Positions 28,016-60,364 of a stretch of 64,000 nt of DNA are shown piece after piece. The position numbers and the translations under genes were made by a program. Below the pieces are notes generated by a model. It searched no databases and was not told the origin of the DNA. It saw only the letters and a program-made list of their open reading frames with translations. The stretch comes from Tubulanus polymorphus. Lineage: Eukaryota; Animalia; Nemertea. Location of the stretch: positions 17,360,110 through 17,424,109 of the forward strand of contig NC_134030.1 of NCBI RefSeq assembly GCF_964204645.1, read 5' to 3'. Every line of letters begins with the position of its first letter. The first letter of the stretch is position 1.

Positions 28016-28430
28016 TATGTACTCTCGGTCTTCTCTCTTTACAGACTGATTGCATTTTACTCTCAGCTCGCCTTGCAGACTGATTGTACTGTACCCTCGG
28101 TCATCTCTCTTTACACACTGATTGTAACGTACCCCTAGGTGCCTCCCATTACATACTGATTGTACTATACCTTCAATCATCTATCCTTACACACTGATTG
28201 AACTGAACTCTCAGTCACCTCCCCTAGCAGACTAATTGCGCTGTGCCCTCAGTCATCTCCCCCTACAGACTGAGTGAACTTTACCTAATTCGGTCATCTC
28301 CCTTATCAGAAACACTGTACTCTCAGTCATCCCACCTTGTAGACTGATTTTACTGATACCTCAGTTATCTCTCCTCGGTGACTGACTGTACCCCAAGTCA
28401 TTTTCCCTCACGACTGACCGCTCTGTATCC
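28016..28430. repeat. 38-bp minisatellite array (diverged)
   Basis: Same unit as 18360-18881. Confidence 0.85.
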
Positions 28431-31274: not shown

Positions 31275-34200
31275 TGTTCTTGTTTATCCTCGGGTCCTGG
31301 CGTTTAAACTATAAACTGGCCCTTGAATCAGGGAAACTAATCTATCTGACTCTAACACCTGCTTCCATATTTGATCAACAACTTATGCAACAGCTATACA
31401 AAAAAATCAACTAAAAAATTTGATATGTAACAGATGTAACAATTTTCATTATAAGATCACAGGTTCAAATCTTACCCCCTAAAGTGACATCCTGTCTCTT
31501 TAATTACTCTTAAGTCTATATCCACTAAATTAAACAAAATCTAACTTAACTATAGCTTAACATTGAACTTTTAAGAACTAAACTTTTTCTATAAATTTTC
31601 TGAAGAAATTACTAAACTTAACTCTTGTAATATAAATTAATTGGAATGATTCTTTGTAATTTTACCAAGATTTGTATATGAATTATATCTAAATCTATTT
31701 CTATATGTGCAGCATATACTTAAAACAATTTTCACTTAAACTCAATTATCTAAATACAATGTAGTCACACAAATCTAAGGTTCAACTTTCAACGCAACAC
31801 GCGAACCGCAAACGAATTATTAAGACTAGATAATCTCAAAATTGACTTTTAACACAAATTACTCTTCGGTGAGTAATCAAACATATTTATGCGACAATAT
31901 ATGTTTGCTGATTTCTAATTCCAACCAACGAATGAATTACGCATCAAATTCGGTTTTTCCTTTCGAATGATTGTTTCACTGTTGATACAACGCATAACTA
32001 ATATTATTTTGAATTAAATTCCAGAGGACTGATGTTGCCTATGGAACGCTTATAAACCTTTTTCGAGGTTTCAACATCAACAACACGAATTAATCCATCT
32101 TTTCCTGGATAGACCGATTTGATTTCTCCCAATTTCCACTGCCGCCTTGGAAGATCCTTATCGATAACTAACACAATATCTTCGTTCGCAATGTTCTGAT
32201 TTGGAGACAACCATTTCTTTCTCGCGCTCAACTGGGGTAGAATCTCTTGGATCCACCTACCCCAAAACTGACGAACGACTTCCTGACTATGTCGCCACTG
32301 TTACGCAAATTGAACGGAATGCAGTCTACACTACTCGGCGCAGTATCTCCGCTGTCTCGTCCCACGATAAAATGATTTGGTGTCAACATAGGTTCATTTA
32401 TATCTTGACCAACCAACGGTCTCGAGTTCATTAGTCCTTCAACTAACGTAACGACTGTACGAAACTGCTCATCGTTTAATTCGCTACCTCCGATTATTGC
32501 TTTTATCGAACGCTTTGTGGCTTTAATCATTGTTTCAAATACACCACCGAAATATGGACTAACAGGTGGATTCCAAATCCAGTTTACTCCGTTATTCGCT
32601 AAGTTATTCGATATCTTATCTTGATCAAGACTATAAAGACAATCGACGAGCTCCTTCAACTCTGATTCTCCTGAAACGAAACTTCCACCGTTATCTGATA
32701 AGCATCTTTTAGGCCACCCACGCCTTGCCGCAAATCTTGAGAATGCGCAAAGGAACGAATCTGTATCCAGGCTATCAGTAGCTTCGAGATGTACCGCTCT
32801 GACTTGCAGATCGACCATCAAAAGGAGGTATCTTTTCGCCCTAGTACGACCTCTGCCCATCTTAACTGAAAACGGACCCGCGAAATCCAGACCGATTTCT
32901 GAAAACACATTCCATGATGGGTTTACTCGAATACTAGGCAGAGGAGCCATCTGTTGACTGAGACGCTTCTTTCGTAACCATCTAAGACAATACGCACAGC
33001 TGTTTAGGATTTTCTTAACCGCAGTCGACCCTTGTAAAATCAGAGATTTTCTACGAAGAGTGTTAAGAATATGTACTGGTCCAACACTATGTGCAGTATC
33101 ATCATGTGCCTGTACTATCAAAAGTCTTGTAATGTCACTCGACTTTGACAGAATTATCGGAAATTTTGTTTCTTCCGGTAATAATTCGCATCTTTCGACT
33201 CTCGTTCGCGATCGAAGAACTCCATTTTCGTCCAGGTATGGGTTCAACCCTGCGATTTTACTACTGAGTAATACATGTTTCTTCTTTTCTAATGCTACTA
33301 TTTCTTCACTGAAAGCTTCTCTTTGACCTACTTTCACTAACTCTACCTCCGCTGCTTTCAGTTCATCAGGAGACAATACACGATCATTATTTCTGCTCGA
33401 CTTACACGTTTTACAGTTCAATACAAATCGCTTAACCCACGCATAAATTCGAACCAGCGAAAACTTTCCTGTCCAGGATATACCACCGTTTTGTACGGGT
33501 AACCGTCTAGACCATCGACTAGGTTTCAAACTCCACACAAATTCATCGAGTGGAATATTCGTCATCGAATCATCATTTTCTTTGCGATTTTCTGTATTTT
33601 CGACATTTAAATCCAACGCACGAATCATAAACCCAGTAGGTTTTTCTGTGTCTGGATTTTCGACTGTTTCATGAGTAATATAATCCCTCCAATCTTTACG
33701 AATTTCATCCATTGCTTTGGATGATATTTTGATCTCTGTTTCTGGCCACGAGTCTGAGTTATCACATAGAAATTGTGGTCCGTGCCACCATAACTCTTCA
33801 TCTTTCAACCGAACTATACTGCAGCCTCTTGACGCGACATCTGCCGGATTACAGCTTGTTGGTACGTATCTCCACTGAGACGGAGAGGTAACTTCATGAA
33901 TTTTACCAACACGATTTGAAACAAAAGTCTTGTAGCTTCGACTTTCTCCTCCTAACCAGAACAAAACATCATAAGAGTCGCTCCAGAAAGTAGCTTCTTC
34001 TATTGGTAATTTCATACTTTACTTACTCGTCTTGTCAACTGCATACCAATTTCCGCAGCCATTAACTCTAGCTTAGGAATTGAAATACTCTTTGTTGGAG
34101 CCAACTTCGATTTTGCAGTAACTAGCGTGACAGTAACTGAACCATCTTCATATGTAGTTAACTGATACACTGCTGTGGAGTAAGCTCTAATCGAAGCATC

Positions 34201-37200
34201 ACCGAATGTATGTAAAGTCACCGATTTTACATCTTTTCGAGTCTTCAAACATCTTGGTATGTGGAGACATGAGATCAATGACAAATCTTCACACCACAAT
34301 TTCCATTTCTGACGTAATTGTGACGTAAGAATCTCATCCCATTCGAGTCCTTTCAGCCAAATTTCTTGCAGAATGATTTTCGCTTCAAGGACTTTAGGTG
34401 CTATAAGTCCCATTGGGTCAAATATCCGAGCGATATAACTGAGAACTTCACGTTTCGTTATACTGTCGTGGTATTCTGGTACGTTAACTTGATATTCAAA
34501 TGTGTCTGATTCTGCTTTCCAGTAGACACCCAGAACTTTGGTTTTTGGCAATACATTGTCTTGAATCTTCAATCTATCGGATTCCGGAATTTCTTCTAAG
34601 ACAGTTCTGTCATTTGACATCCATTTTCTATAATGAAATCCTCCATCTGTAGCCAAAGCCGTTAACTGTTGTCTGGTGGCTATGGCAACATCTGGGTCAT
34701 CCATTGAACAAATGGTGTCATCCATGTATGTTTTCGAATCAACTGCATCAGCTGCAAGGGGAAAACTTCTTTCTTCATTTTCGCATGAGTCTGCCATACA
34801 TACTGAGCACAGCAAGGAGAGTATGTTCCACCGAATACATGCCTTTTAAATTCATAGACTTCAATTTCACCGGATATCTGATTTTTCCAGAGATATCTAT
34901 GATACTTTCGATCTTCTGGCTTCATTTCTATTTGCAATACATCTGTGAAAGATCTGCACCCATAGCTTTGAGTCCACTTCTGAATGGACCTTTGAATTCG
35001 ATATAATCTTTGGTCAGGTATTCTGCGATTGTTTCCTCATACGATTTTTTGATGTCCGGATTGGAATCAATTTTCTTCATTAATAATTTAAGTCTGTTCA
35101 ACGCTACTGACTGATTATTTTCCAGATAGGGACTTTCATCCTTCCAAGGAACGCCAATTTCATAACGCTTGCCGTCGAACTTCAACGATTGCTCAAGCTT
35201 TTTCTGAGCTATTTCTTCGTCAACAGATAATTTGGATCTTGATTCATCGAGACCCGATTTTTCTTTCTCCCAAAACGCTTTTAGGGTAGAATCTAACGAA
35301 ATTTCTTCTTCATTCGGATTTTCACGATTAGCCAAAATCGTTTGACAGATTACATGAGTCTGTTTCTTCACGTTATGTGACTGATTTACATTGTCACCGA
35401 TACACGTCCAACCGAACGGACAAAGACGAGCGATTGGATCCGACGGATTTGGACCGCATATTTCTTTCAAACAGTACAGTAGATGTCTACAATCTTTTCC
35501 AAGTATTCCCTCAACTGTAGAATTAACACTAACATCTGGAAAGGGTATACCTTGTAGATGTGTCCACCGATTACGTATCTTCGACCATGCAATCGACACC
35601 ATACTGTCACAAACGTTATCCACTACGTAAAATCGCTGCGTGGCTAAGATTCTATCTGAACCGTTGTAATGTCTTATGTTTACATCACAAACTTTCGATT
35701 TCGTTGAAATTTCCGAACCATCGAATACTTTAACCGTCAAAGTTTCATTGTTATATTTCAAATTACGCATATGCGATACAGCGTGAGTACTGAGGTAACT
35801 AATGTCACTGCAATCATCTAGAAGAACTATTATCTGACGTTTATCATGACCATCACCAATATAGATAGGAAGAGTTCTCATTCCAACGTTCACTGAACTA
35901 TCTATAGCATATATCTGCTTCGCCATAAACGAACCATTCTTTTTTACGTCAGTTTCTAATGACGACTGGCTAGTTTCTTGATCTGTAGTTTCATCATCTT
36001 TATTTTCCCGATCATAAATTTCTGATTTCTTAAACTTCGGTCGATGCAACATCGAACTGTGTGTTAGAGTACAGCCAGATACTCCACACTGTCGTCTACT
36101 ATTACAATCCGAACCACGGTGATACGGACGTAAACATCGAAAACATAAACCAAGCCTTTTTGCAGTAGTCCAACGTTCATTTTTCATCTTTCGGAAACGG
36201 TCGCATTTTACTTCAGTGTGTTCCATTCCACACACGCTACATTTTACTGAATTACCCACGAAGGTACCACTACGTTTATTCGGTAATTTTCTATCAACAG
36301 TCTTCGAATCATTCGATACTCCATGAAGACCCTTAACTGCTTCACGAGCTTTCACCTTTCGCGCAACGACTTCTGAAAAACCATTCACTTAAGGAAGCAA
36401 GACCTTCGTCACATGATCTCGAGCTTAACCAGTCATAGTACTGTACAAGCAATATCTCAGGAATCTTTCGAGATACGATGCTATACCAAGCACCATCGCC
36501 GAGATCATCACCTTTTCCTCCAGCTTTCAATTTTGCTACTGCAACGACGAGATTATCCGACAATTTTTCTAATTTGTCGATATCATAAACTGACGGCTTT
36601 TCTGACTTTTCCAATTCATCTAAATATCCCTGTAGTTTCCTTCGTTCACCACCAAAAATCTGAACGAGTAACTTTTTTGCCGCTTCGTATTCCTCTAAGC
36701 TATAACCGAAACCCTTTATGGTATCAATAGCTTTTCCTTTCAACGAGTTCATCAACCGTAGCATTTTATTAGCTGCTGGTTCATCTGTACTGTCAACTAC
36801 GTTCACGAAGGCCATCCAGTAACTGTCGAATGTCAACTTATTTCCATCAAATACAGGAACTTTTATGCGTTCAAGTTTGGAAACAGCTGCCGTAACCGAC
36901 GATTCATCTTCTTCAAGGCTAATTCTCTTTCTTGGAGTGGACGTTTTCTTTTTACTCGTGTCATTAGATTCATTGACCGAACGATTCAATAACAGAGAGC
37001 GAGCCTTTTCTATTTCATATTCTGTTGAATTAAAAACCTCTTCTGCTTCAGCTTGAATATTCTGAACGCCTTTACTGTTATTTTCTGTTAAGTGGAGTTG
37101 TTCTAACTCATCTAGTACTGACAGGACTAAATCTCTTTTCTCATGAATATTGTCTATTATTTCTAATACGTGACTACCATCAGTATCTTCTTTACTTTCT

Positions 37201-37487
37201 AAGACCTTTGCTGTCAATTTTGTTAGGAGTCTACTCAAAGTGCTTTTTTCTATTTTCTTAAGCTTTTTCAGCTCACCTAAACCACGTTTTGAAGTATTTC
37301 CGGTTGCATCAACATCAGCCATGATTGCGAAATATTGTCAGCAGTTACTGAAGTCTAATTATCTGATGTTAATACTTGCTCTTTCTGATGTTCTATTTCT
37401 ATTTCATGAGCCAGCTTTACAGTTTTCTTGTGTTCCCGGGTTTCGGCACCATTTTATGTTCTTGTTTATCCTCGGGTCCTGGCGTTT
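31275..37487 (-). mobile_element. BEL/Pao LTR retrotransposon, defective
   Basis: gag-PR-RT-RH-IN order; tRNA-Phe PBS at 37434-37451; 31-bp terminus tgttcttgtttatcctcgggtcctggcgttt at both 31275 and 37457. Confidence 0.92.
32004..37322 (-). pseudogene. gag-pol: BEL/Pao gag-pol polyprotein, frameshifted, with an RT N-terminal deletion near 34990
   Basis: KLERIKVPVFDG (DUF1759-like), three Cys/His knuckles, LLDDCSDISY protease, TYMDD, HTFGDAS, SIPKLEL, WRYVPTSCNPADVASRG, GLDFAGP, SDNG, GGVFE, ISPLE. Confidence 0.93.
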
Positions 37488-41074: not shown

Positions 41075-42353
41075 TGATCCGCGGCAAGATTCCGTAGTAA
41101 CTAAAAAATGTTTGTAATGTTGGTTTTTGTTTGCGTTGGTGGTTTCTTTGTGGGTATCAGACAACAAACGATGTAGTCTAAAATTGTGCAAGTTGTTGTT
41201 TGATGCTTCGATCTATCAGTGCTGACAATAAATCAGCCTGGTGCAAAAATAATTCTTTCTCGGTTCTTGTGCTGCGATATCTGGCAAACATTCAGAATCA
41301 TTTTTAAACTTAAGAATAGACGGAACCGTAATTGGTTGGGTCGGAACAATGAGGTGCTTTGATAATGTGGTTTGTGCAGGGATCTCGCTGTTACTTCTTG
41401 ATACTCCCGACTACTTTCTATAAAAGGAAGAACCGGAAGTATAGGAAGACATTGTTGTTTTGCTTTATCCTGTATTATAATAGAATTAGTTAAATTATAA
41501 ATGAAAATTGGTATTATAAGTATAGAATGATTTTAGATTTGATAATTAATTACATTGTATTTCTGAATCAAAAGTTTACTATTGTTAATTGGAAAAAGAA
41601 ACGATGAGTTTGTTCCATAATCTAGGTGAAAACTAAGTTTTGAAAATATATCTAAATTAAGTATCCTGGATGTTAATTAAGGACAAGACCTTTATAATCG
41701 CTTAAGTTTTATGGAAGTTTAATTGTGGCAAATATCAATACTAGCTCTCTAAAGTTTCTGTTGGTGTACATGTCTGTTGGTAACTCGTAGAGAATAGCTG
41801 CTCTCTCAACAATGATAAGCAAGGAGTGAGTAAATCAAAGCGCGTCATGACAGGAGGGTTGAAAAGAAAAGTTACTTTGGCAAATCAGTTTCTCAAATAA
41901 TTTTAGATTAGCGAATCATTAAGGCTAATTCTACATGTCCAAAACCGTCATGACAGCTAGGTTGCTGCTCCTTGCCAAAAGTCGAACGGGAGAGTCGGCA
42001 TTCTAGGAATGCCGATCTTTTCTATAAAAGAGGCCCGCAGTCTTGAGAAAGCAGACCTACTAGGGACGCTCGTTAAGATACTTGAGATTTGGGTTGAAAT
42101 ACCAGAATTAAGACGGGTTACCAACAGTAGTGTACAATAGGAATTTAGAGTTAGGAATTGGACTGTGTGCTATCTGGAGATATTACTATTATCAAGGTAA
42201 ATAAAATCTATTTTATTTTTATTATATTCAATCAGAATTTCGGCATTTTAGTTTGATTATTTGGGTTTGTGCACGGACACGTTCTCTCGCCAGGGACCGA
42301 TCTTTACGTTTTTATATTCAACGATTAAGGAGAGGATTGTGACCGGTGTATCA
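41075..42353 (+). repeat. 5' LTR of family A
   Basis: Direct repeat of 48973-50251; TATAAAA at 41419 and 42023; AATAAA at 42200. Confidence 0.95.
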
Positions 42354-42354
42354 T

Positions 42355-42372
42355 TGGTGCCGAAACCCGGGA
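42355..42372 (+). promoter_or_regulatory. Primer-binding site, tRNA-Phe
   Basis: TGGTGCCGAAACCCGGGA is the complement of the metazoan tRNA-Phe 3' end. Confidence 0.92.
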
Positions 42373-42430
42373 AATCAATAATCTTCGGTTTACGATAAAC
42401 TTTTTACATTAATTGTTTAGTTTTGTTCAA

Positions 42431-42958
42431 ATGGTACATATTTCCGTATGCTCCCACTGTGGTGCGAGGAACGCATTCTCTAAGAAGCGCCGCACTACAA
42501 CCAACTCAACATACGAAAAGAAATTGTGGGGGTCGAACCCACCTAATACCAAACCGTTTGAAATTCCGGTCGAGTTTCGGGAACCATTGTGGGATTTGAA
42601 CCCACTGCCCCCTCCGGTCGACCCTGTTGAGACACTGCGGGATTCGAACCCCAGAGGTGCACAGCCATTTGAGATCCCGGAAGAGTATCGGGAGCCGTTG
42701 TGGGATTCGAACCCACTGCTGACTTTGGCCGTATCTGCTGAGCCTTTACGGGATTCTAACCCGACCGCCACACAGCGCGAAGCTTCGATCACCTCGAGGG
42801 ATTCGAACCCTCTCGAACGCCGGCAAAGGGTAAAGCCAGTGAAAGTGCCCGAGAAATTCGACCCATTTTGGGCACATTTCTTTCGCGATTTTGCAAACCC
42901 GGCCGAGTTGTTCTTTGGTGATAAAGACGCTGACGGCTATTTCCTTTGTCCAGCATAG
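42431..42958 (+). CDS. Accessory ORF a: CxxCG plus six L(W/R)DSNP-type repeats and an aromatic tail
   Basis: Open ORF from an ATG; the tail differs from the 24730-24825 copy by 7 synonymous and 2 non-synonymous changes in 31 codons. Confidence 0.7.
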   Translation: MVHISVCSHCGARNAFSKKRRTTTNSTYEKKLWGSNPPNTKPFEIPVEFREPLWDLNPLPPPVDPVETLRDSNPRGAQPFEIPEEYREPLWDSNPLLTLAVSAEPLRDSNPTATQREASITSRDSNPLERRQRVKPVKVPEKFDPFWAHFFRDFANPAELFFGDKDADGYFLCPA

Positions 42959-43052
42959 ACTAAGGGGGTCTTATAGTACCAGTCAATTGTTAACTTTATG
43001 ATTGCCTGATTGTTATTTGTGGAAAATATTTTGTGTTGTTTGTGATTGATAC

Positions 43053-43493
43053 ATGTCAGCTGGGTTGAGGTGTGGTTACTGTGGGGCAACGGTTTACAAG
43101 ACGCACACGCTTGCCCCAGTCCCCAAGTCTAGTTGGGAGGTACCAGCTCATTTAAGGGAGCCACTGTGGGATTCGAACCCACTCAGCACCAAGGGTACCA
43201 CTAACAACAGAGCTGCTGAACAGCCACTGTGGGATTCGAACCCACTTAGCATCAAGGGTATTACCAACGACAGAGCTGTTGAACAGCCACTGTGGGATTC
43301 AAACCCACTCAGCACAAAGGGTACCAATAACGACGGAGCGGTCGGACAGACTCTGAGGGATTCGAACCCTCCACCCAGCGGGCTTAATATTTATACGTCT
43401 ACCTGGGATCAGGGGGATTTCAGTTTATGTGCTATCCCTGACCACAACGTATTGTTGGCTGATAAGTCGCGAATATACAGCTACTTTGATTAA
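43053..43493 (+). CDS. Accessory ORF b: CxxCG plus four 21-aa PLWDSNP repeats
   Basis: Open ORF; the N-terminus is conserved in the 24375-24610 copy, which has fewer repeats. Confidence 0.65.
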   Translation: MSAGLRCGYCGATVYKTHTLAPVPKSSWEVPAHLREPLWDSNPLSTKGTTNNRAAEQPLWDSNPLSIKGITNDRAVEQPLWDSNPLSTKGTNNDGAVGQTLRDSNPPPSGLNIYTSTWDQGDFSLCAIPDHNVLLADKSRIYSYFD

Positions 43494-43585
43494 ATTGGGG
43501 TTATTTATTTAAATTATAATAAGCAATTAAACTCGAATTGTATAATTTTCTTTTTGGTGATTATTATTTGTAAGTTAGTACGTTA

Positions 43586-44407
43586 ATGTCGGGGTCAATT
43601 ACGGTGAGGTGCACAAACAAACGTCGTAGCACTGGTTATTGGAGTACACTACCCCGAAAAAGGTGTCTCACTACTGTGAGTATAGCACCCGCAACACCTA
43701 CCATCACAACTGCTTCCCCTGGGACCAGTGCTGGGACTCCAACTTCTCAGTCTTCAGACTTTGACTTTTTGGATAGTTGTTTGTATTGTGAGGGCCCAAC
43801 GTTAGCGGTTTTTCAGGACCAGGTAAATTGTACTTGCTCGTTTTCAGTGACCCCTTCTCCGCCCCTAAGTCCTTCGGGTACGGATTCGATCCGAGATAGC
43901 TCGATACGGACTGGTGAACCTTTCACACGGCCGCCGTCATCAGCTGGATCAACCGGTTCCAGCGACTCAAGCTTTTCGTGCTGTTGTTCGGTGCCGCCTG
44001 GTTCACCTATAGGGTTTGATCAGTTCGACTTAGAGCAACCGGCAGACCTGTCTGCAACTCGATCTTTAAACAGACCATTAGCAATTGTTACGCCTGTAGC
44101 GGGCCAACTGTTGGGCGGACATTTGGGCGCACCTGTCCAAAGTTTTCCACTAGACCTGTCCTTAGGTGCGTCTGCGGTTGACCAACCGTTGGATCTGTCG
44201 CCCAGCGGGGGTTTAGGCCGATTTTCGGAAAGTCAGTCTGCCCTTGGCCCTTGCACCTCGTGGACTTTTGAGGAGATTGATGACATTCTTTCGTCATTTT
44301 TAAGGGAAGAGTTTACGGTGGAGGAGGTTGCCCGTACTTGGGAAAACCTACTTTGTTGGGCTGATCGCCAGGATCAGGTTTGGAATTTAAAAGTAGCATC
44401 ATCGTAG
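43586..44407 (+). CDS. Accessory ORF c: low-complexity protein with NLS-like KRR/PRKR and three PxDLS motifs
   Basis: 273-aa open ORF; PADLS at 44039, PLDLS at 44147 and 44186; motifs retained in the 23370-24179 copy. Confidence 0.7.
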   Translation: MSGSITVRCTNKRRSTGYWSTLPRKRCLTTVSIAPATPTITTASPGTSAGTPTSQSSDFDFLDSCLYCEGPTLAVFQDQVNCTCSFSVTPSPPLSPSGTDSIRDSSIRTGEPFTRPPSSAGSTGSSDSSFSCCCSVPPGSPIGFDQFDLEQPADLSATRSLNRPLAIVTPVAGQLLGGHLGAPVQSFPLDLSLGASAVDQPLDLSPSGGLGRFSESQSALGPCTSWTFEEIDDILSSFLREEFTVEEVARTWENLLCWADRQDQVWNLKVASS

Positions 44408-44441: not shown

Positions 44442-45539
44442 ATGGCAACTAGAAGCGGGACAACATACGGGTCGGACGATGCGGGTGGCTTGCAGGGGCA
44501 AACCTCTACAGGAGGGAACCCACAGGGTCACCCCCCAATTAGCAATGACACGGTTTTAGAGGCCCTCTCGGGCTTACGCGAACAGGTGGACACGGCCACC
44601 GCGTTTATGAACTTCTCCATGCTCCCGAAATTTACAGGACGAGACAGTCAGTGCGTCTCTGATTGGTTCAGAGGGTTCAATCGTTTGGCCGATCTGAGAG
44701 GCTGGGACAAAAATGCCAAAAAGAAACAGTTAGATTGGTTTTTGGCTGGCCCAGCCCTAGTTCTATTCAATGACCTCCGCATTGATCAGGCGACCGATTC
44801 GACCGGCACAAAAATTACCACTCCCTGGGAAAATATTGTCCGTGCGTTTTGCGCGCAATTTAGCCCTACCTCGTGGGCTTTGGACAAGGAGTCGGCTTTG
44901 ACGACGATGCGACAGGGGGAGACACAACCGGTCGATAGGTTTGCGGAAGAGATTGATCGTGTGGCCTCGAGTTTGAAATTTTCGGACCACCAGAAAAATA
45001 TGTTACTAATTAACAACTCACGCCCTGACATCTCTGTCTACCTGTTGTCACAGCGTCCGACGACATTTAGGGATGCATGGGAGGCAGCCAGAATGGCGGA
45101 GCATATCGAACAACGTAAAGCTCTGTCGTCTCCCAAGGTATCGCAAATTGGGACCGAACCAAATAAAGCGATGGGTGACGTTATGGCTGAATTACGGGAC
45201 ATGTTCCGCCAAATTATGGACATCCAGAAGTCTACCCGTACTCAGCGGAATGATAGAGCCACATTTTATAGCGAAAGCCGCCCGTCACAAAGGTCACAAG
45301 ATGGCCAGGTGGTGTGCTTTCAATGTCACGCCCCTGGTCATTACGCCAGGAATTGCCCGACGTGGCGTTACGACCAACAAAGGTCACCAAACCGGGACGC
45401 ATTTCAGCGTGATAATCGCCGTCCCCAAAATGCTAGTAGGGGTCACTTTCGGTCACAGAATCTTGGGCGTGATTCCCAGCGGGTTAATCGAACATTTGGC
45501 CATGGAAACGACCGGAGACCTCATCCTATGGACCGATAA
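44442..45539 (+). CDS. gag: Gypsy Gag (capsid plus CCHC knuckle)
   Basis: PKFTG...WF...W, QGETQPVDRFA, CFQCHAPGHYARNC. Confidence 0.92.
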   Translation: MATRSGTTYGSDDAGGLQGQTSTGGNPQGHPPISNDTVLEALSGLREQVDTATAFMNFSMLPKFTGRDSQCVSDWFRGFNRLADLRGWDKNAKKKQLDWFLAGPALVLFNDLRIDQATDSTGTKITTPWENIVRAFCAQFSPTSWALDKESALTTMRQGETQPVDRFAEEIDRVASSLKFSDHQKNMLLINNSRPDISVYLLSQRPTTFRDAWEAARMAEHIEQRKALSSPKVSQIGTEPNKAMGDVMAELRDMFRQIMDIQKSTRTQRNDRATFYSESRPSQRSQDGQVVCFQCHAPGHYARNCPTWRYDQQRSPNRDAFQRDNRRPQNASRGHFRSQNLGRDSQRVNRTFGHGNDRRPHPMDR

Positions 45540-45541
45540 GG

Positions 45542-45672
45542 GTGGGGTCACGCAATGAATGGTCAACTGAGCCCTCGCCGGACTCGTTAATAAGGAGTGA
45601 TTATTGGTGGGATGACACATATTCGGGTTATCATAGTTATGATGATGACAGTCCGGTAATTGATGATTATAT

Positions 45673-45716
<44 letters not shown>

Positions 45717-46759
45717 ATTATTATTTAGAGGACGATAGGGATGATATATTTGACATGTCATTTGATCAGGGCGACATGCTAGCTGACTCATTTTCTCTTT
45801 ATTTTGAACCTGAGGGGAACTGTAATGCAGATTACTTAGATGACACTGAACCTTTACATTTAGATAAGTTTATTGATTATCACACTCCTTCATGGGGTGC
45901 CGATGACGTTTATGACATTCAAGATCGTAACTTTGGGGATAGCTGGAGGGACAATTCTCAGTTGTCGTTAGATGGAAATTTTTATATGGATCAGGGATCC
46001 AATTTTGAGGACATCTGGAAGGACAATTCCCAGTTGTCGGCTACTTACGGGCATATAAATAGACACAGGAGGGTTACGTTTAGCGATCCGGTTAAATTGC
46101 AGGAGGTACGTGCTGATATGGCGTGCTCAGGTGACAATATTTGTATTGATAGGTCACACCCTAGAGGGGTTAATGGTCCGACGGATTCGGCAGAAGATGA
46201 CCTTTTTAGAGATAGGAAGTCTCATTTAGATTGTCACGAAGGCGCTTTTGATCAGTATAGGTACCCAGCAACCTCCGAATCAGCAATACAATGTGATCTT
46301 GTGTCATCAGATTCAAGTAGTAGTAATAATTCACGATCGGAATGTCTTAATGATCAGAGTAATATGGAAACTATTTTGTCAAAGATATCTAGTCAGGAGT
46401 CAATGTCGGAGAATTTGTGTCACTCGTTTGAAAGAGGACAGAACTTTCCTGTCACCTCAAATGCCAGCAGTTTTCACCATCCAGTTAGGGATGGCATGTC
46501 CCATGAACAGGACAGAGGTCAAGTTGTCCTCACGTCTAAACCGAATATGCAAATCAACGAAAAGGTTGGGATAGGAGATTCGAACTCCGATTGTCAACCA
46601 ACTGTTCACTGTCAGGAACAATTTCCACCTGTTACGATGACTTTAGGTAACACGTCAACCAACGACATAGGGTCCTTTTCCAGTCAGAACAACACTATTG
46701 GACAGGAGGCTTATTCCCCGTCAAATCATGGCAACTGCCGCCAACCGAGTGACTGGTAG
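45542..46759 (+). CDS. Acidic low-complexity ORF between gag and protease
   Basis: 405 open codons, Asp-rich, (GAT)13 at 45677-45715; homologous sequence at 63700-64000. Confidence 0.55.
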
Positions 46760-47519
46760 TCATTCAGGGACACCGTTAAACATTTTGATTGATACGGGTG
46801 CCGATATTTCTGTAGTGTCAAACAATTACTTCATCAATCATCCTCAGATATCGAATGGCCCTTTGCAGGAGGGACAATTTCAGTCCGCCCGTGGGGTAGA
46901 TGGTACTAAGTTTTATTTAAAAGGTGTTATTTCCGTAGATTTTGTATTAGGAAATTTGGACGTGTCACATTCTATGTACGTGGTGGATGGAGTCACCTCG
47001 GACTTCATTCTCGGAGTTGATTTCCTGGAACGAAACCAGGCAGTTATCGATTATGCTAAAAAGGCTCTCTTGTTGCCAGGCGCCGACATAATTTACTTTA
47101 GTAATGATGTCATCTTGGGGAAATCTTCGTCGGTTAAAGTCACGCGTATGACTGTTATTCCCCCTTCATGCGATGTCACCGTAGACCGTAAGTGGTTAAT
47201 TGACAAGTCTCAGTCATCGATTGCAGCCTTTGAGCCTGTACATGATTTGAGAATGCGTGATCGCATGAGCGCAAGGTCAGTTGTTAGCGTCATGCCATCA
47301 AGGCATCGGTTTCGAGTCACGAACCCTACGTCACGACACGTCACCCTCTTTGAAGATACGTGTCGTAGTGATTCGTGGACAGATGGGTGGTCACTTGACC
47401 GATCACTCAAAACAGAGGCGAAGTCAGGACAGCTTCCTCGGCCACCGGAGGTGTCTATCACACATGTGGAAGACCCTCAGACGTCAGACAAAATTTGTAA
47501 GTATAATCGAATTATTTAG
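46698..47519 (+). CDS. pro: Retropepsin aspartic protease (truncated pol)
   Basis: ILIDTGADISVV and FILGVDFL. Confidence 0.9.
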   Translation: MDRRLIPRQIMATAANRVTGSHSGTPLNILIDTGADISVVSNNYFINHPQISNGPLQEGQFQSARGVDGTKFYLKGVISVDFVLGNLDVSHSMYVVDGVTSDFILGVDFLERNQAVIDYAKKALLLPGADIIYFSNDVILGKSSSVKVTRMTVIPPSCDVTVDRKWLIDKSQSSIAAFEPVHDLRMRDRMSARSVVSVMPSRHRFRVTNPTSRHVTLFEDTCRSDSWTDGWSLDRSLKTEAKSGQLPRPPEVSITHVEDPQTSDKICKYNRII

Positions 47520-48972
47520 AGTTTGGATCAAGATGCATACGTCCTATTGAAAATTATGAATTGTATACGGTAAGCGTCTCTTCAGTAAGTTATCGAAATA
47601 TAATTACTTAAGTGTTGTAAAACTGAAGTATATATAACGCATTGTTGCCAATGAGTTAACTCCTGATCTGGGTTTAATCTAATACAGGAGATAAAGACAA
47701 CTATAAATAAAAGTGAATAATAGCTTGATTGTCGTGATATTGGTTTTTTTTTGCTGAAATATCACTAGTCTCTAGGGTTTATTATCTGTAGTCTGAATGG
47801 ATGTCATTAATTGTCAGTTAGAAAAGAAAGAGTTATGATATGTTTGAATAATCTCTGTATTATTATGATATTAATTGTAGGATACCCGTATCGGATGTGT
47901 TGGAATGAGACCGCCGAAGATACGATAGCACTTAGATGGAAGAATGCCTTCTTCTGTCAACCGCAATAGATGTTGATGGGTACCCCCCTGATAGTGACCA
48001 TATGGAGATGGGGACTTGTTGGGAGGTATCCTGAAACTCTATTCGATGCAACTGATAGTTGAAAAACCAGCAACTGGTATGCTCTGGCCGAGATGGGTGA
48101 TATTAATTCACCGATTCGTCAATTAACGAGGAAAAAGGAACAACTATATACAGCCTACAACAACGATCTAGGGCGTTGCCGTTTCAACGGGATGGAATTA
48201 TGCTCGATGATTAGTCATGCGATTCTGGCCATTGTTAGTGGTGTTTGTCACTCTCGAAGACCTGTTATATACTCACAAACTTAAGTGATGAAGGGTGGAC
48301 AAAGACACCTGGCCAATGCGATACGAAATATGAAGAAAAGTGATAATTTCCGTAGACATTTTAGCGGAGTAAAGCCGAGTGTGTTCAAGATGGCTCCCGT
48401 GTAGTTACATTAACATTCGATGGAATGTTGTTCGCTCAAGCCGTAAGATGCGAATACATTACTGTTCCGTTTCTATATTAACTGTGGAGAAAAGACTCCG
48501 ATATAGTAACCGTAGTACTATAGCGTCTATGAATAGCGAGCATTTGCCGTACTATCAACGTAGCAGTACGCGCTGCGAGGAACTGCGGTGGATGACGTCA
48601 TTCGTCCGTCCATGACGTACTTTGTTGTGTCTGGTAGCTGTTGCGTCACTTCGCGGTAAATTCTAAACTCAAACTGTGAACTGTTTTGTGCTTAACTTTC
48701 GACTGTTTAGTGTGCGGGGACAGCGGTCTCGAATGAACTTTTTTCCGATTGGGTATCCAGAACTTTAAATGCGGTTTTATGATAAACTATATCCTGAACT
48801 TTAATACGCGTTTGTTGTGTTGAACTTTTAAACAGTTACTCGTTGCATGAATTGTTTTTTTTTGTAATTGATGTTCTTTTTCAGGATCTGTCTAGGGAAG
48901 TTTCAGCGCGATTTTCATGAGTCAGTCTAAATTCAAAATTTCGGGACGAAATTTAAGCTGGATGGGGAGTGA

Positions 48973-50251
48973 TGATCCGCAGCAAGATTCCGTAGTAACT
49001 AAAAAATGTTTGTAATGTTGGTTTTTGTTTGCGTTGGTGGTTTCTTTATGGGTATCAGACAACAAACGATGTAGTCTAAAATTGTGCAAGTTGTTGTTTG
49101 ATGCTTTGATCTATCAGCGCTGACAATAAATCAGCCTGGTGCAAAAATAATTCTTTCTCGGTTCTTGTGCTGCGATATCTGGCAAACATTCAGAATCATT
49201 TTTAAACTTAAGAATAGACGGAACCGTAATTGGTTGGGTCGGAACAATGAGGTGCTTTGATAATGTGGTTTGTGCAGGGATCTCGCTGTTACTTCTTGAT
49301 ACTCCCGACTACTTTCTATAAAAGGAAGAACCGGAGGTATAGGAAGACATTGTTGTTTTGCTTTATCCTGTATTATAATAGAATTAGTTAAATTATAAAT
49401 GAAAATTGGTATAATAAGTATAGAATGATTTTAGATTTGATAATTAATTACATTGTATTTCTGAATCAAAAGTTTACTATTGTTAATTGGAAAAAGAAAC
49501 GATGAGTTTGTTCCATAATCTAGGTGAAAACTAAGTTTTGAAAATATATCTAAATTAAGTATCCTGGATGTTAATTAAGGACAAGACCTTCATAATCGCT
49601 TAAGTTTTATGGAAGTTTAATTGTGGCAAATATCAATACTAGCTCTCTAAAGTTTCTGTTGGTGTACATGTCTGTTGGTAACTCGTAGAGAATAGCTGCT
49701 CTCTCAACAATGATAAGCAAGGAGTGAGTAAATCGAAGCGCGTCATGACAGGAGGGTTGAAAAGAAAAGTTACTTTGGCAAATCAGTTTCTCAAATAATT
49801 TTAGATTAGCGAATCATTAAGGCTAATTCTACATGTCCAAAACCGTCATGACAGCTAGGTTGCTGCTCCTTGCCAAAAGTCGAACGGGAGAGTCGGCATT
49901 CTAGGAATGCCGATCTTTTCTATAAAAGAGGCCCGCAGTCTTGAGAAAGCAGACCTACTAGGGACGCTCGTTAAGATACTTGAGATTTGGGTTGAAATAC
50001 CAGAATTAAGACGGGTTACCAACAGTAGTGTACAATAGGAATTTAGAGTTAGGAATTGGACTGTGTGCTATCTGGAGATATTACTATTATCAAGGTAAAT
50101 AAAATCTATTTTATTATTATTATATTCAATCAGAATTTCGGCATTTTAGTTTGATTATTTGGGTTTGTGCACGGACACGTTCTCTCGCCAGGGACCGATC
50201 TTTACGTTTTTATATTCAACGATTAAGGAGAGGATTGTGACCGGTGTATCA
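48973..50251 (+). repeat. 3' LTR of family A
   Basis: Preceded by the hairpin aaatttcgggacgaaattt and the PPT. Confidence 0.95.
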
Positions 50252-51371: not shown

Positions 51372-54184
51372 ATATAGCTGCTAAGCAGCGATGACGGGTT
51401 TTCTGCAGAGCCATTCAGAATGATGGGAATTGTAGTAAATTGAAATGCCGATACATAGAATGAAATGCATTGACAGATTCGAACCTAATATGCAACCACT
51501 GTGTAAAAGGTCAAATATGATTCAGCTTTGAAACCGAACATACGCGGGCGTACAATCAACAAATATGAATTTATTTGACCAGGCATTTTTTTGGCATTCA
51601 AACATCATGATACTGTTTTATCACCATGCTTAACTAAGGGTCCAGGGACACCATGCCCACTTGGGAAGTGGTTTCAAATGCTCAACAATCTAACAATTTC
51701 GATATTCAACGCCCCCTGGTGACCATATACAAAAACAAATGACCTTGAAACTCACCACAATCATAGAACATGTCATATGCAACGATTTTGTAATTGATTG
51801 TGATAACAAAATATTCTCGTTACCAATTTAGTATGGTAATACTAAGTTATTCTACAATTCAACGCCCCCTGGTGCCCATATTCAAAACCCAATGACCTTG
51901 AAACTCGCCACAATCATAGAACATGCCATGAACTACAACTTTGCAATTGATGATGTTAACAAAATATGCCTAGGCACCAATATAATAAGGAAATAAGTTA
52001 TTCTACTATTCAATGCCCCCCCCCTGGTGACCATATAGAATAACTAATGTCGTTTGAACAGACCACAATCATAGGCGATGTCATGAGCTACAACTTTGCA
52101 ATTGATTGTGGTAACAAAATATGCATTGGTACAAATATAATATAGAAATACTAAGATATTATATTATTCAACGCCCCTTGGTGGCCATATAAAAACACTA
52201 ATGACCTTGAAACTCACCACAATCATAGAAAACCTTATAATCTACAACTTTCTAATTCATTGCGGTACCAAATATGCTAAGGTATCAATATAATGTCGAA
52301 AAACTTTTTCCCACCGAATGAGTACCGATAACACCAAGATGGCCGCCAATTGCGTCATAATTGGCTGATCAAATATACCTACCTCAGGTATAAACCATCC
52401 CTTTCCAAAGAATACCCATCAGCAATTGCAATGACAAATGGCAAATCAGTAGGAAGCTAGAGGACTCAGAATTCGGACCTAAATTGACAATTTTGGGCAC
52501 TAAAAAGGTCATAGGACGGCCATCTGTAGTCCGATCGACCCACTTTTGTTATTCTTATGGGCCCTGGGGAGATTCAAATATATAGGAAAGATCAAGGTAA
52601 TTGATCAAAGCGTCTTCAAAATTTCCCTCAAAAAGTTCAAAAACGTATAAAAAGTGCTGATTTTGGCAAACAACAATGGCTGCCAGTCGGCCATCTTGAT
52701 TCTGACAGGGCCAGTTTTTGGACTGAAGATGTGTCTAAGGTAGATACATGTGTAACCCAAATATCAAGACTTTACATAGAAGCGTCTTCAAAACTTCCCA
52801 AAATAACTGGATTCCGTCTACGGACGGACGTACGACGGACGAAAATTGAACGCAATAGCTCGTTGGGACTAAAGTCCCATGTGGGCTAAAAATGGATCTG
52901 TCCTATTATGAACTCATCTTTAGCACCTGCTGAGTCGATAGATTGAGTGAATTTACAGATAAAAACGTATTATGATTTGGAATAGATTTAAGAAGATAAT
53001 CTATTTATTGAAATATTTGAATAAATACATATATTGTAGTGTAGATTCAATCAATAAATTATGAATGGATTTGGTCTGGGTTTCCGCCTGATGTTGATTT
53101 TGGCCTTTATGGAATTACAAATTCTAAAGTGATAAACAATTTATACCTGCAACATGTGTGTAAATCAAACCTATCCCACTAGTTGCGTGTGTTTCCTAAT
53201 AAACGGGAGAGTTACTCTTGATCTGAGTTATTAGAAAAATAATGTTCATATATTTATAGAAATTTATTGCCTTTTTGAAAATTCTATAATAATATTTGTT
53301 CTGTCCTAATTTTTATGACCGTATGAACCAATGATATGCTATGTAAATATGATGTAATAAAATAAATTTGAATTTGAATTAAATTTGAATATGAGAATCA
53401 AGCATAACTTGTGTCTTTTCAACTTGTCTTACTTGTCTCTTGTTAACAGTTCCAGAGTTTCGATTACAATCAAATCCAAATTGGCTAAAAAGTATATAAG
53501 ACTAAATGAAATGAACTGTTAGTCACCGCAAAGGTTATGGCTGTTCGAATATCACGGATACCGGATACCGGACACCTAAATACCGGATACCGGATATTCG
53601 AGATTGCGGAGTATATAGCGCATCGGGTCTAAGGAGTCATTTTTTCAAAAGTAAAACGCCCCCCTGGTGGGTGAACGGGGTCTCCAATCAAAGATCCTTA
53701 GACTTACCTTGAGGTACCTGTGTTCCGTACAACTCACAAAAGTTTCAAGTAAATCCGTCAGGGAATATTGTAATGCTAGCAGAATATAGTCATCCAGGCT
53801 CTCGCGTATAGATAGCTGCATTCATTAGCTCTATCTAGGGAAGTTACTGCAAGGATGCTATTGCTTGTATGCGGCATAAACAAGGCTATAAAAATTCCTC
53901 AGTTGCGTTCACTCGAGACTGGCCACATTCAGTGCGCCTCATATATAGTAGCATAGATAAAAAATACTAAAAAACTACAGATCTAGTACACAGCTCTATC
54001 ACTGCTTATGGGACACTGGCACAAACACACGTACTGACGCGCTGTGGGAATGACACATAGGCAATACACATATGTAGATGCATATCGGGCTTAAATTTCG
54101 ATGTTTAGAGGCTCACAGTGAGTAAACAGTGAAAGTAAGTTGCAGTTGTTTATATCCTTTCAGTAAGATCCAGTGTGAAAAAGA

Positions 54185-54236
<52 letters not shown>

Positions 54237-54900
54237 CAGCAGGAATACAATAGGGTTTCTGCGAAGGCAGCAGAAACCCTAATTATTATTATTATCATTA
54301 TTATTACTATTATTATTATTATTATTATTAATATAGCTGCAAAGCAGCGATAACGGGTTTTCTGCAAATCCGCACCATGCCATTCAGGTTGATAGGAATT
54401 ATTGGAAATTTAAATGCCGATACATGAAATATAATGTATTGACAGATTCGAACCTAATATACAACCACTGTGTAAACGTCCAATGTGATTCAGCTTTGAA
54501 ACCGAACTTACGTGGACGTAAAGTCTATAAATATGAATGGATTAGACCTAGCATTTATTTTCTATCACCACGCTTAAAAATGGATCTGTTCTATTAAGAA
54601 ACTCAACTTAAGAATCTGCTGAGTCAATAGGTGTTGAATACATTTACGGATATAAGAACGTATTAGGATTTAGAATAGATTTCAAGGAATTAATCTTTTT
54701 ATTGGAATATTTGAATAAATATATATATTGTATTGTAGATTCAATCGATAGATTATGAATTGCTTTGGTCTGGGTATCGGGCCAATGTTGATTTTGGCTT
54801 TTATGGATTACTGATTCTATACTGATAAACAATTTAAACCTTGCAACACGTGCGTAAATATCAAACCTATTCCACTAGTTAAGAAACTGTTAGTCACTGC
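51372..54900. mobile_element. Cluster of nested Helentron/HINE-like non-autonomous repeats
   Basis: Two copies start atatagctgc.aagcagcgat (51372 and 54331). An insert at about 51633-52890 has four units of about 153 bp, (GGAC)n and a terminal hairpin. (AAT)n plus a hairpin at 54187-54330. Confidence 0.6.
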
Positions 54901-54974
54901 AAACTATTCCAGTGTTATGTCGATCGTGTTAATCGCTTTGCTTCAGTTGAAAGAATCAGACCGTATATGGTATG

Positions 54975-57900
54975 TGTTGAGTTATGTTCTCAATTTACTC
55001 ATCTTAGTGTGAGAGATTGTTTATTGTTTATATACCGGGTGGATGCTGCATGTAACCAAGACACACATCTGTTTGTAATTATTCTTGCATCTCTTTGTAT
55101 TGTGGTTAAATAAAGATTAGTACGAGTCAGATAGTCAACGAAAGAAGACGTGTTATAGTTTCGCTGCTCAAGGATTTTCCCCCATCATGGAAGGACAAAA
55201 CTCAACAGGTTATGGGCCCAGGGCACCAGCTGGACGCTATGGTCGACTTTATTACGATGGGGATGAAAGAAAATACGAACAATGGGAGGCAAAGTTTTTG
55301 GCTTAAATGAAAATACAAAAACTTAAAGCGGTAATTACCCAAGAAGCGGAAATTGATGATACGGACCTGGATTTAGTCGACAAAAATGAACAGGCGTACG
55401 CAGAACTCATACAGCTACTTGACGACAGGAGTCTGAGCCTGGTAATGCGTGAAGCTGCAGATGACAGTCGAAAAGCATTAGCGATTCTGCGACGTCATTA
55501 CCAAAATGAGGGAAAACCGAGGATCATTTCTCTTTATACGGAACTGACCTCACTAGTCATGAAGCCAAGTGAAAGTGTGACGGACTATATAATCCGCGCA
55601 GAAACGGCAGCAACAGCTTTAAAAACTGCCAAGGAGAACATAAGCGATAGCTTATTAATCGCGACGGTCCTAAAAGGTTTGGCGGATAGTTATAAACCTT
55701 TTGTGGCGATAATCACGCAGAAAGACGATGCCCAAACGTTCTTGGACTTTAAAAACGCCCTCAGAAGATTTGAGGAGACCGAAAAAGCGAGGAAAGATAC
55801 GGCAGAATCATCAGATGATCATGTGATGAAAAACAGTTTCCCCGCCAAAAATGTCAAGGACAGTCAAAATAGCGGGAATAGTAGTGGCCCTAAGTGTTTC
55901 AGATGTGGAAAGATTGGGCATTACAAAAAGGACTGCTACGCAAAATATTGTTCTACATGTAAGTCCAATACCCATAGTGATGAAAATTGTCGCGCACAAA
56001 ACCGCGGGAAAAACAACGGTCGAAAAGATAGATTTCATCGAGCGAAAGATGACGCCCGATCATCAGATGACGACGGTAACGAACATTCATTCTCATTTCT
56101 ATATAAAGCTGGGTGTGATCATAGAAAAATTCCTGATGTGAAATCTCAAAATATGCACATCCCGGTGAATGAAGATGCCCTGAAATCGTGTTCGAGCCGA
56201 AAGAAGAATTCAGATGATATGTTGGTGGATTGTGGAGCTACGTCTCATATACTTACGGACTTTGGATTATTCACGAAATTTAATGAAACATTTGTGCCGG
56301 AAAAACACACAATTGAACTGGCTAATGGAGAGCGCTCAACAAATGTGGCCGAAAAATGTGGAGATGCAGTAATTAATTTGAAAAACTCTGACGGAATAAA
56401 CGTGAAATTCGAACTCAAAGATGCTCTGTATGTCCCGAGTTATTCGCAGGACATTCTATCCGTTCGCGCTGTGACAAAAGAAGGAGCAACAGTCACATTC
56501 CGTCCCGAGAATGCAAATCTCAAGTTCAAAGGTAACATTTTTAACATTCATATGTCAGATAGATTGTATTATCTTAGTAGTGTGGATCAAAATGATTGTG
56601 ATTATGTTAGCATCACTCGTGACCTTCAAAGTTGGCACGAGGTCTTAGGTCATTGTAATTATGAAGATGTAATTTCATTAGAGCATGTAGTCGATGGTAT
56701 GAAAATCAAAGGTGTCACAAAAATCCCCGATGGTTGTATTGTGTGTACTATGGGAAAGCAAACGTGTGGTCGGAGTAGAGAGGCAAGGGCTAAATCCAAA
56801 GCTCCCCTAGATTTAGTGCATACTGATTTGGCAGGGCCAATTGAACCGGTATCCACTGAGGGATTCAAGTATGCGATTTCCTTTACTGACGACTATTCAG
56901 GGGCTGTGTCTGTATATTTCCTAAAAGCAAAAAGTAACACGACTGAGGCTACGGAAAAATTCCTGGCTGACATGGCACCCTTTGGTAAGGTAAAAAGGTT
57001 GAGATCAGACAGAGGGTCAGAATTTCTGTCTAATTCATTCAAGTCACTTATGAGTAGAAATCGCATAAGACACGATACCAGCGCCCCCTATAGTCCTCAT
57101 CAAAATGGTGTTAGTGAAAGGCATTGGAGAACACTATTCTCTATGGGTAGATGCCTGTTATTTCAGTCTGAGCTGCCAAAAGAAATGTGGCCGTATGCAG
57201 TTATGGCGGCAGGTTATATTAGATACAGGTGCTACAATAACCGGTTGAAAAAGACACCATTTCAAGCAGTCACAGGTAGAAAACCTAATGTGTCAAATAT
57301 GCAATCTTTTGGGTGCAGGTGTTTTGCCTACCAACAAAAGAAAACCAAGTTAGACTCAAGATGTGTTGAAGGTATTTTTGTAGGATATGATAAAAACAGC
57401 CCATCATATCCGGTGTATTTTCCTGAGACAAACAAAGTTCTGAGGTACAGGGTTGCGAAGTTTCACACCAAGAAGTTTGTAGAACAACAAACACAAACAG
57501 GTGCACATGATGATGATGTTTCTTTATGTGAGTTTCCAATAATCAAATCTGACACAAATAGCAGCTCAAATGGTTCCAAAGTTCAACCACAATTAACAAC
57601 TGTCAGTAACCAAGGGACCAGTAACTCACATGATGAAACTGATGAGTCGAGATACCCCAGGCGTAAGAGAAAGCCTCCTGCTTATCTCAATGACTATATA
57701 AGTGATTCAGATTTAGAAAGTTCATGTAACGATGACCATATGTTATTTGTATCGGACTCAAATGTAGATTATTTGTGTAAGACTAAAGTTCACCCTGTGA
57801 ACTATAGTGAGGCAATAGCATCCCCTGAGGCACAGCAGTGGCACGAGGCAATGAAGGAAGAGATTAAATCCTTAAAAGAGAATGACACATACTCTTTATG

Positions 57901-59881: not shown

Positions 59882-60364
59882 GTATGATGCAACATCGGTC
59901 GAAGAGAGTTGGTGTTGACTGACTGCCCTTGACCATTTATCTTCATGTGTTTGACATCAGCATATACCCATGAACTGCAAAATTTTCATAGAACATGAAA
60001 ACGTATATACATGTATACAGTATTCAAACTTTCACCGATGTTGGATATTTGATAAACATTGGCTTATTTCAATATTTTAAAGCAGGAAATAATAAGCCCA
60101 AATCAATAGGCCGTATTTCCATTGGTATAATGCGTTCAGCTGTACCGTACACTCATCTGTCGAAATTGGAGAAATCGGTATACCAAACCTACGTACAGCA
60201 AAATGTACAGGCCTACATAATGATTTCTTGTTTTCCTGTATACAAGCCGTGATCACACTAACGTTTTGGATCTAGGTTTGACTATAAATGTCAGGTCAGC
60301 AGACAAGGCCTGAGCAAAATTTAATCACATGGCTCAAATAGCCTTTCTGTGTGCGAATACTTTA

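Follow-up and report, generated by a model that had tools for sequence, protein, structure and literature searches.

The window analysed here, 64,000 nt of Tubulanus polymorphus contig NC_134030.1 (forward-strand positions 17,360,110-17,424,109), contains a retrotransposon with long terminal repeats (LTRs), element A or copy A, and two further copies, B and C. Between the primer-binding site (PBS) and gag of element A lie two open reading frames (ORFs), ORF1 (42431-42958, 175 codons) and ORF2 (43053-43493, 146 codons), both on the plus strand, as are all features below unless marked (-). ORF1 starts with the first ATG past the PBS, which has A at -3 and G at +4, and contains six copies of a short repeated unit; ORF2, its paralogue, contains four and ends in a related tail. 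Each 17-nt unit encodes the core of a recurring peptide motif and, on the minus strand, reads like the T arm of a tRNA.

The first array (42526-42812) comprises units starting at 42526, 42589, 42637, 42700, 42748 and 42796, spaced by 63, 48, 63, 48 and 48 nt, from which TRF extracts a 111-nt super-unit (63 + 48). The second array (43166-43371) has a period of 63 nt, with units at 43166, 43229, 43292 and 43355 (spacings 63, 63 and 63). Allowing up to three mismatches, the 17-mer occurs 16 times in the window against 0.11 occurrences expected from shuffles; unit 42748 has four mismatches and was found with a 13-nt core search, which adds other diverged units too. The stems vary (GTGGG/CCCAC, GAGGG/CCCTC, CGGG/CCCG), and an isolated unit folds into a hairpin of 5 bp and a 7-nt loop at about -6 kcal/mol on either strand. 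A preliminary description of this stretch had given the same ten units, starts and 48/63-nt spacing, the same stem variants and five units in copy C at spacings of 62, 62, 60 and 54, all of which we recover. It had placed the array in the retrotransposon leader; the region is not an untranslated leader, and the units sit inside ORF1 and ORF2, in one codon phase. Its remark that the units also code is borne out, one stem partner being the wobble base of a Pro codon.

All ten units of copy A share this phase, which is G-TGG-GAT-TCG-AAC-CCA-C throughout the first array, the first letter being the wobble base of a Leu codon and the last the first base of the following codon; all eight spacings in copy A are multiples of three. 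The encoded motif, [E/Q]-P-L-[W/R]-D-S-N-P-[L/P], recurs at 16 or 21 residues between poorly conserved linkers, and four of the ten units carry Arg in place of Trp. Both proteins have the same layout, with an N-terminal C-x2-C-G-A, four to six motif copies and a conserved aromatic C-terminal tail. They match each other in BLASTP at E 2e-13, the C-x2-C-G-A starts included, in an alignment that extends outside the repeats.

For evolutionary tests three copies are available in the window, two of them damaged. Compared with copy B, ORF1 has a ratio of nonsynonymous to synonymous substitution rates (dN/dS) of 0.24 in frame. The two remaining sense frames give 1.06 and 1.17, the three antisense frames 0.98, 0.33 and 1.31. 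The antisense value of 0.33 is no evidence for a second gene, because it mirrors the sense frame. The strand opposite ORF1 is open for 121 codons (42427-42792, -). The repeat part of ORF1 taken separately gives 0.35, and its non-repeat tail has accumulated seven synonymous changes and one nonsynonymous change. The pattern is like that of gag, with 0.18 against copy B (1.48 and 1.82 off frame) and 0.12 against copy C. The signal is weaker than in ORF1 for ORF2 (0.45 in frame, 0.81 and 0.87 off frame) and for ORF3, which lies between ORF2 and gag (0.62 in frame, 0.97 and 0.89 off frame). Among the three 63-nt repeats of ORF2, differences are two to five times more frequent per synonymous site (pS 0.21-0.48) than per nonsynonymous site (pN 0.10-0.12).

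Within the core of the units the variable sites are wobble sites, namely the third bases of the Ser and Pro codons. Conservation also runs upstream of the hairpin into E/Q-P-L, which is spelled with varied synonymous codons (CCA/CCG/CCT; TTG/CTG/TTA). Conservation there is not predicted by a hairpin model. ORF1 is a sense-strand ORF under purifying selection between the PBS and gag, and the main constraint demonstrated on the units is protein coding.

Element A, which is young, is delimited by a 5' LTR (41075-42353, 1279 bp, TG...CA) and a matching 3' LTR (48973-50251) preceded by a purine-rich tract. The two differ at 9 of 1279 positions (99.3% identity) and are flanked by a 4-bp target duplication, ATAC. 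One base past the 5' LTR lies the 18-nt PBS (42355-42372), which we take to be complementary to the 3' end of a tRNA-Phe-type tRNA. After ORF2 follow ORF3 (43586-44407, 273 codons, no family match), gag (44442-45539; Pfam Retrotrans_gag with a CCHC zinc knuckle), the Asp-rich ORF5 (45542-46759, 405 codons, no family match) and a retroviral-type aspartic protease (46698-47519, Pfam). Neither reverse transcriptase (RT), RNase H nor integrase follows the protease in copy A, where 47520-48972 (about 1.45 kb) has only short ORFs; copy A is non-autonomous, since RT and integrase are both missing there. It may have transposed in an already deleted, non-autonomous form, or have lost pol after insertion. 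TG...CA LTRs, target duplication, PBS, polypurine tract, CCHC gag and retroviral-type protease are all as in Ty3/gypsy elements, an assignment that depends at clade level on gag and protease, because copy A has no RT, RNase H or integrase and copies B and C are truncated. In ORF5 a perfect (TGA)13 microsatellite (45676-45715) codes for 13 consecutive Asp, and stretches of the ORF weakly resemble the tails of ORF1 and ORF2 (E 0.17).

Pfam and PDB searches return nothing for ORF1-3 or ORF5. A word-indexed search yields no relatives of ORF2 or gag, exact look-ups of gag and ORF1-3 find no record, and gag has no match among bacterial and archaeal genomes and viral contigs. Compared with 1.84 billion representatives, ORF1 has two matches only, both to repeat proteins and both rejected as spurious. 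A DNA pattern made of the motif and its context gives seven single matches in metagenomes and no array. A two-unit pattern gives 17 loci in viral contigs, with phage tRNA genes in four of the five checked; the locus that was read has a tRNA T arm beside a tRNA fragment. AlphaFold2 run on the single sequence predicts no confident fold (pLDDT 51.6), a result of little weight.

Copy B is diverged and damaged and extends over about 22000-25400 (-), without the PBS and the start of ORF1. Its repeat region (24417-25071, -) has stops and deletions and retains seven recognisable units, orthologous to A2-A7 and A10, where the preliminary description had given one. Copy C runs from about 61090 to the end of the window and has five units (62284-62538) starting at 62284, 62346, 62408, 62468 and 62522. 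The first two have their orthologues in units 1-2 of ORF1, and those that follow are orthologous to the end of ORF2. A 1-nt deletion and stop codons interrupt the frame of copy C, which has no ORF3. Directly after the LTR of copy C, at 62122-62224, a PBS-like segment (TGGTGCCGAAACCCC...) stands in 3.3 tandem copies with a 31-nt period, versus one PBS in copy A; this repetition shows that the region just past the LTR does duplicate tRNA-complementary pieces. A 38-nt satellite forms three arrays of 7-12 copies each (18404-18847, 25453-25717 and 28018-28285), two of which flank copy B.

The reverse complement of the unit is letter for letter the T arm of an ARAGORN-called tRNA-Ser gene in a phage locus. 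On the minus strand it forms a 5-bp stem and a 7-nt T loop (TTCRANN) with the G53-C61 closing pair, as in a T arm, and it also fits the B-box consensus of RNA polymerase III (Pol III) promoters. The likeness to a T arm and a B box, already pointed out in the preliminary description, is a fact of sequence.

The stems had furthermore been said to covary in a way that protein selection alone could not explain. In an alignment of 22 units, 87% of cells are paired, with observed values above those of column shuffles, a control that ignores relatedness. When relatedness is kept by sliding the 3' partners by +1, the covariation score is 0.193 for the true register versus 0.184 for the slid one. The informative pair, between the first base of the Trp/Arg codon and the Pro wobble base, is U-A in 13 units, A-U in four, C-G in one and unpaired in four. 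The four A-U cells make up two orthologous sets, A6/B6 and A10/C4, which may trace to one event; this is conceivable because the paralogues ORF1 and ORF2 both end in an Arg-type unit. Given the Pro codon usage of the element, three or more of the four Arg-type units would pair by chance with a probability of 0.10, or 0.22 when A6 and A10 are taken as one.

Between orthologous units, five pairs are altered on both sides and three of these still pair (permutation p 0.02). Two of the three lie at deletion junctions of copy B, one of 39 nt after B6 and one of about 200 nt inside B10, so that the 3' halves of B6 and B10 are not orthologous. One compensated event is left, C-G versus U-A in unit 5, beside an uncompensated double change. 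The minus-strand unit at 24836-24852 had been cited as a co-varying case: its AAGGG/CCCTT stem does pair, but orthologous compensation fails, as the 3' T of the outer A-T pair borders the 39-nt deletion. With a near-equal slide control and two or three independent events, the proposed covariation does not clearly outlast a correction for relatedness, and the claim that selection on the protein cannot account for the stems finds no support (chance p 0.10-0.22). CpG decay was considered as a cause of the change from TGG/CCA to CGG/CCG and rejected, the CpG observed/expected ratio being about 0.97.

Compared with shuffles, the arrays show no excess folding stability (z -1.7 and +0.43). When 42354-43600 is folded with a partition function, the probability of the unit's own stem exceeds 0.9 in two of the ten units on the plus strand and three of ten on the minus strand. 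In this context the quasi-palindromic units pair with one another instead of forming their own stems.

We scanned the element for the loop ATTCGAA with a flanking stem, taking codon shuffling of the ORFs as the null. In ORF5 the hairpin GGAG-ATTCGAA-CTCC (46574-46588) is read in the array codon phase as G-D-S-N-S; an exact loop with a 4-bp stem is expected 0.001 times. ORF3 has a hairpin at 43881-43893 (copy B: 23866-23878, -), again in the array phase and encoding D-S-N. The copy B site has a CGG/CCG stem with the exact loop, and that of copy A has mutated to a longer perfect palindrome, CGGAT-TCG-ATCCG. ORF3 residues 92-116 align with ORF1 unit 3 at E 0.012, and we take the site to be a relic unit because of this weakly homologous stretch. 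A third candidate, in gag (44794-44806), was discarded: its stem is 3 bp long, its loop is imperfect, and copy C does not retain it. A constraint or bias acting on the nucleotides themselves finds its strongest evidence in the ORF3 and ORF5 hairpins. Their stems could reflect selection on an RNA hairpin or, equally, template-switch correction of a quasi-palindrome centred on TTCGAA. Template switching has been described as creating and maintaining hairpins without selection (PMC8794818).

We consider it moderately probable that the units are simply codons for a repeated peptide motif in accessory proteins of a gypsy-type element. The element has a minimum of two accessory genes related as paralogues, ORF1 and ORF2, located after the PBS and ahead of gag; relic units persist in ORF3 and perhaps in ORF5. 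Tandem duplication would have passed the self-complementarity and the antisense T-arm match on to every unit. The proteins are predicted to be disordered, multivalent carriers of a linear motif that may bind a partner of the host or of the element, which would liken them to the small accessory proteins encoded at this position by MDG1-group elements of Drosophila. The few compensated stem changes would come from chance or from template-switch correction of quasi-palindromes during replication or reverse transcription, not from selection on structure.

Several observations weigh against this interpretation. The Pro wobble base pairs in three of the four Arg-type units. The wobble bases of Asp and Asn are invariant in all 22 units, while the rest of the element uses AAC for only 39% of its Asn codons. 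Counting all three sites outside the arrays, hairpins occur 3 times against 0.11 expected (p 3e-4, codon shuffle), and the stems of ORF3 and ORF5 are altered on both sides and still complementary, with the flanking amino acids changed too. A hairpin of such shape would match a T arm at all 17 positions roughly once in 1000 cases, and with the codon usage of the element W-D-S-N-P would be spelled as in the unit about 1% of the time. The case for translation and function of ORF1 and ORF2 is drawn from three copies in one window, with no homologues found. Finally, the interpretation offers no route by which ORF2, ORF3 and gag, downstream of ORF1, would be translated.

One alternative, compatible with the coding interpretation, concerns origin: an antisense 3' part of a tRNA near the PBS, for example an extended or duplicated primer-binding segment, would have been multiplied in tandem and then taken over as coding sequence, leaving the T-arm likeness as a relic. 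The units share the orientation of the PBS and lie just downstream of it, the T-arm match is exact, copy C carries its 3.3-fold, 31-nt tandem repeat of a PBS-like segment, and three units are preceded by [C/A]GG-G-7 nt-T arm, loosely like TGG-N-acceptor-T arm. However, the T stem is unlike that implied by the present PBS (CCGGG versus CCCAC), the resemblance upstream is weak and limited to three units, the flanks fit no tRNA model, and there is no outgroup to compare. Rfam covariance models give no family at gathering score in the window, only T-arm-sized partial matches; the top tRNA match is tRNA-Sec at 21.9 bits and E 0.17, against a gathering score of 47. The earlier proposal that the units act as tRNA mimics meets the same obstacle. 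ARAGORN calls a 101-nt tRNA-Arg(ccg) at 62338-62438 (-) that straddles two copy C units and has no Rfam support; we rejected it as probably spurious. We regard a tRNA-derived origin as possible but doubtful.

A broader alternative is that the array is dual-coded, its 17 nt encoding the D-S-N core together with a cis-acting hairpin of fixed loop and freely covarying stem, either a packaging or dimerisation signal or a mimic of the T arm and B box, kept even at the dispersed ORF3 and ORF5 sites with their altered flanking residues; a related option has the motif born from the antisense 3' half of a tRNA duplicated by the PBS. We consider this combined reading rather unlikely. In the specific form in which hairpins with an AUUCGAA loop and variable stem also act on the genomic RNA, for example as dispersed sites that Gag or the C-x2-C accessory proteins recognise in packaging or dimerisation, with the UUCGAA palindrome available for loop-loop contacts, we judge it unlikely. 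The units are located between the PBS and gag, the stretch in which retroelements carry their packaging and dimerisation signals, and the isolated hairpin is stable at -6 kcal/mol. The ORF3 and ORF5 hairpins with the array loop and changed, complementary stems (p about 0.001), the paired Arg-type units and the invariant Asp and Asn wobble bases all count in favour. On the other hand, the Ser wobble breaks the middle of the loop palindrome in four independent units, there is no excess folding energy and most units lack their own hairpin in context, covariation is no better than in the slid control with too few independent events, and the weak gag hairpin is not kept in copy C. Template switching at quasi-palindromes yields this pattern without selection (PMC8794818).

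The preliminary description had put forward binding of TFIIIC to the units as an insulator or anti-silencing array, a role like that of extra-TFIIIC sites; a B-box array might also drive minus-strand transcription by Pol III. Seven of the ten copy A units keep a B box compatible with the consensus, the other three altering position 56 or 57, and multiplicity and position are like those of the Su(Hw) array of gypsy. However, the equivalent of C56 on the minus strand is the Ser wobble base, the most variable base of the core (TCA/TCT in A5/B5, A9, C2 and C3), and unit A2 alters G57. An A box is needed for Pol III transcription, though not for extra-TFIIIC sites, and none lies at tRNA-like distance (30-60 bp upstream, same strand), where the best matches average 3.1 mismatches versus 3.6 in random windows, the best among them being no more than the stem of the neighbouring unit. 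No tRNA or other Pol III family reaches threshold, and protein-binding DNA needs no strict conservation of frame. In yeast, TFIIIC binding is lowered 370-fold by C56G and 56-fold by G57C (PMC11811891). We consider this function very improbable, and the proposal is left unsupported.

Still less credible is a role as capture sites, likewise proposed before, in which a tRNA, through its T arm, or a tRNA fragment would anneal to the units on the genomic RNA, extending the contacts with the primer or soaking up inhibitory fragments. Complementarity to a common T-arm sequence is perfect over 17 nt, and Ty1 and Ty3 retrotransposon RNA contacts the T and D arms of the primer tRNA. Against this, the PBS implies a primer with CCGGG, not CCCAC, as the 3' strand of its T stem; the units are without the acceptor strand and CCA needed for 3' tRNA fragments, folding of a tRNA leaves its T arm unavailable for pairing, and ribosomes would clear ten sites in translated ORFs. 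Least credible of all is a neutral repeat in a non-coding leader with accidental ORFs, since, even if stop-free periods of 48 and 63 nt stay open automatically and no homologues were found, frame-specific purifying selection extends to the linkers (repeat part 0.35) and to the non-repeat tail of ORF1 (7 versus 1), and ORF1 and ORF2 align outside the repeats.

Elsewhere in the window, an apparently intact Ty1/copia element spans 54974-59882, with 235-bp LTRs (54974-55208 and 59648-59882) that are 99% identical and a gag-pol ORF of 1126 codons (55307-58687). The best relatives reach only about 54% identity; proteins named from a sea slug, an octocoral, a fish and a clam-symbiont bin are among them. 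A BEL/Pao element lies at 32228-37322 (-), with four long ORFs (DUF1759, Peptidase_A17, integrase). From the presence of BEL/Pao and copia elements the host is an animal, and it is not human. A further repeat occurs in two copies that hold CAGATTCGAACCT (51474-51486 and 54443-54455), a stemless B-box-like core on the minus strand; the repeat bearing CAGATTCGAACCT may be a fragment of an LTR or else a tRNA-derived SINE. At 51703-52294 lies a tandem repeat of 153 nt.

Accessory ORFs ahead of gag are of a known kind, of which the present proteins and the T-arm-shaped coding repeat form a variant. The nearest counterpart is found in the MDG1 group of Drosophila, whose accessory ORFs upstream of gag are translated, have low dN/dS and lie on unspliced genomic RNA (10.1101/2025.03.14.642691). 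Like ORF1 and ORF2, sORF1 and sORF2 of 412, mdg1, Stalker and blood are small sense ORFs between the PBS and gag with low dN/dS. Unlike those of MDG1 elements, the present ORFs number three or four instead of two, contain tandem motif repeats, belong to no Pfam family and show no similarity to any sequence searched, the MDG1 sequences themselves not being among those compared directly. The FAST-like features of MDG1 sORF2 are a transmembrane helix, N-myristoylation and a polybasic patch; by inspection, the present translations have no long hydrophobic stretch and no Met-Gly start, and neither a transmembrane segment nor an N-myristoylation signal is seen.

The units themselves recall several nucleic acid signals. 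Set beside tRNA T arms, Pol III B boxes and extra-TFIIIC sites, their minus strand is a complete T arm, identical to that of a real tRNA gene, but they have no cloverleaf and no A box, are antisense to the transcript, lie in coding sequence and vary at the C56 equivalent. The Su(Hw) array of Drosophila gypsy is likewise made of tandem short units between the PBS and gag; it is untranslated protein-binding DNA, whereas the present units are codons under purifying selection. The packaging and dimerisation hairpins of retroviruses (the dimerisation palindrome of HIV-1, the GACG loops of gammaretroviral Psi) share the conserved loop with variable stems, the location between PBS and gag and the 6-nt loop palindrome. 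The present units differ in being translated, in having no support from folding or covariation, and in a palindrome broken in four units.

At the protein level, kinesin light chain binds tryptophan-acidic motifs such as TNLEWDDSAI of SKIP, in which Trp is flanked by acidic residues, with Leu at -2 (PMC6214655). Several W-D motifs with a nearby Leu, in proteins predicted to be disordered, are likewise present here. This is a lead only. E-P-L-W-D-S does not fit the motif: Leu is at -1, so that no acidic residue directly precedes Trp, and four of the ten units have Arg.

Altogether, this locus adds an orphan accessory-gene family to the short list of LTR retrotransposons with extra ORFs ahead of gag. 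Accessory ORFs in that position have only recently been shown to matter, for the cell-to-cell spread of MDG1-group elements. The array is also a caution, as codons, shared descent and deletion junctions can together yield a palindromic repeat with apparent stem covariation. If the residual signals, the exact T arm and the dispersed compensated hairpins, are true, the element would offer a rare example of a retroelement whose protein code overlaps with an RNA or DNA code, or it might hold a tRNA fragment turned into coding sequence.

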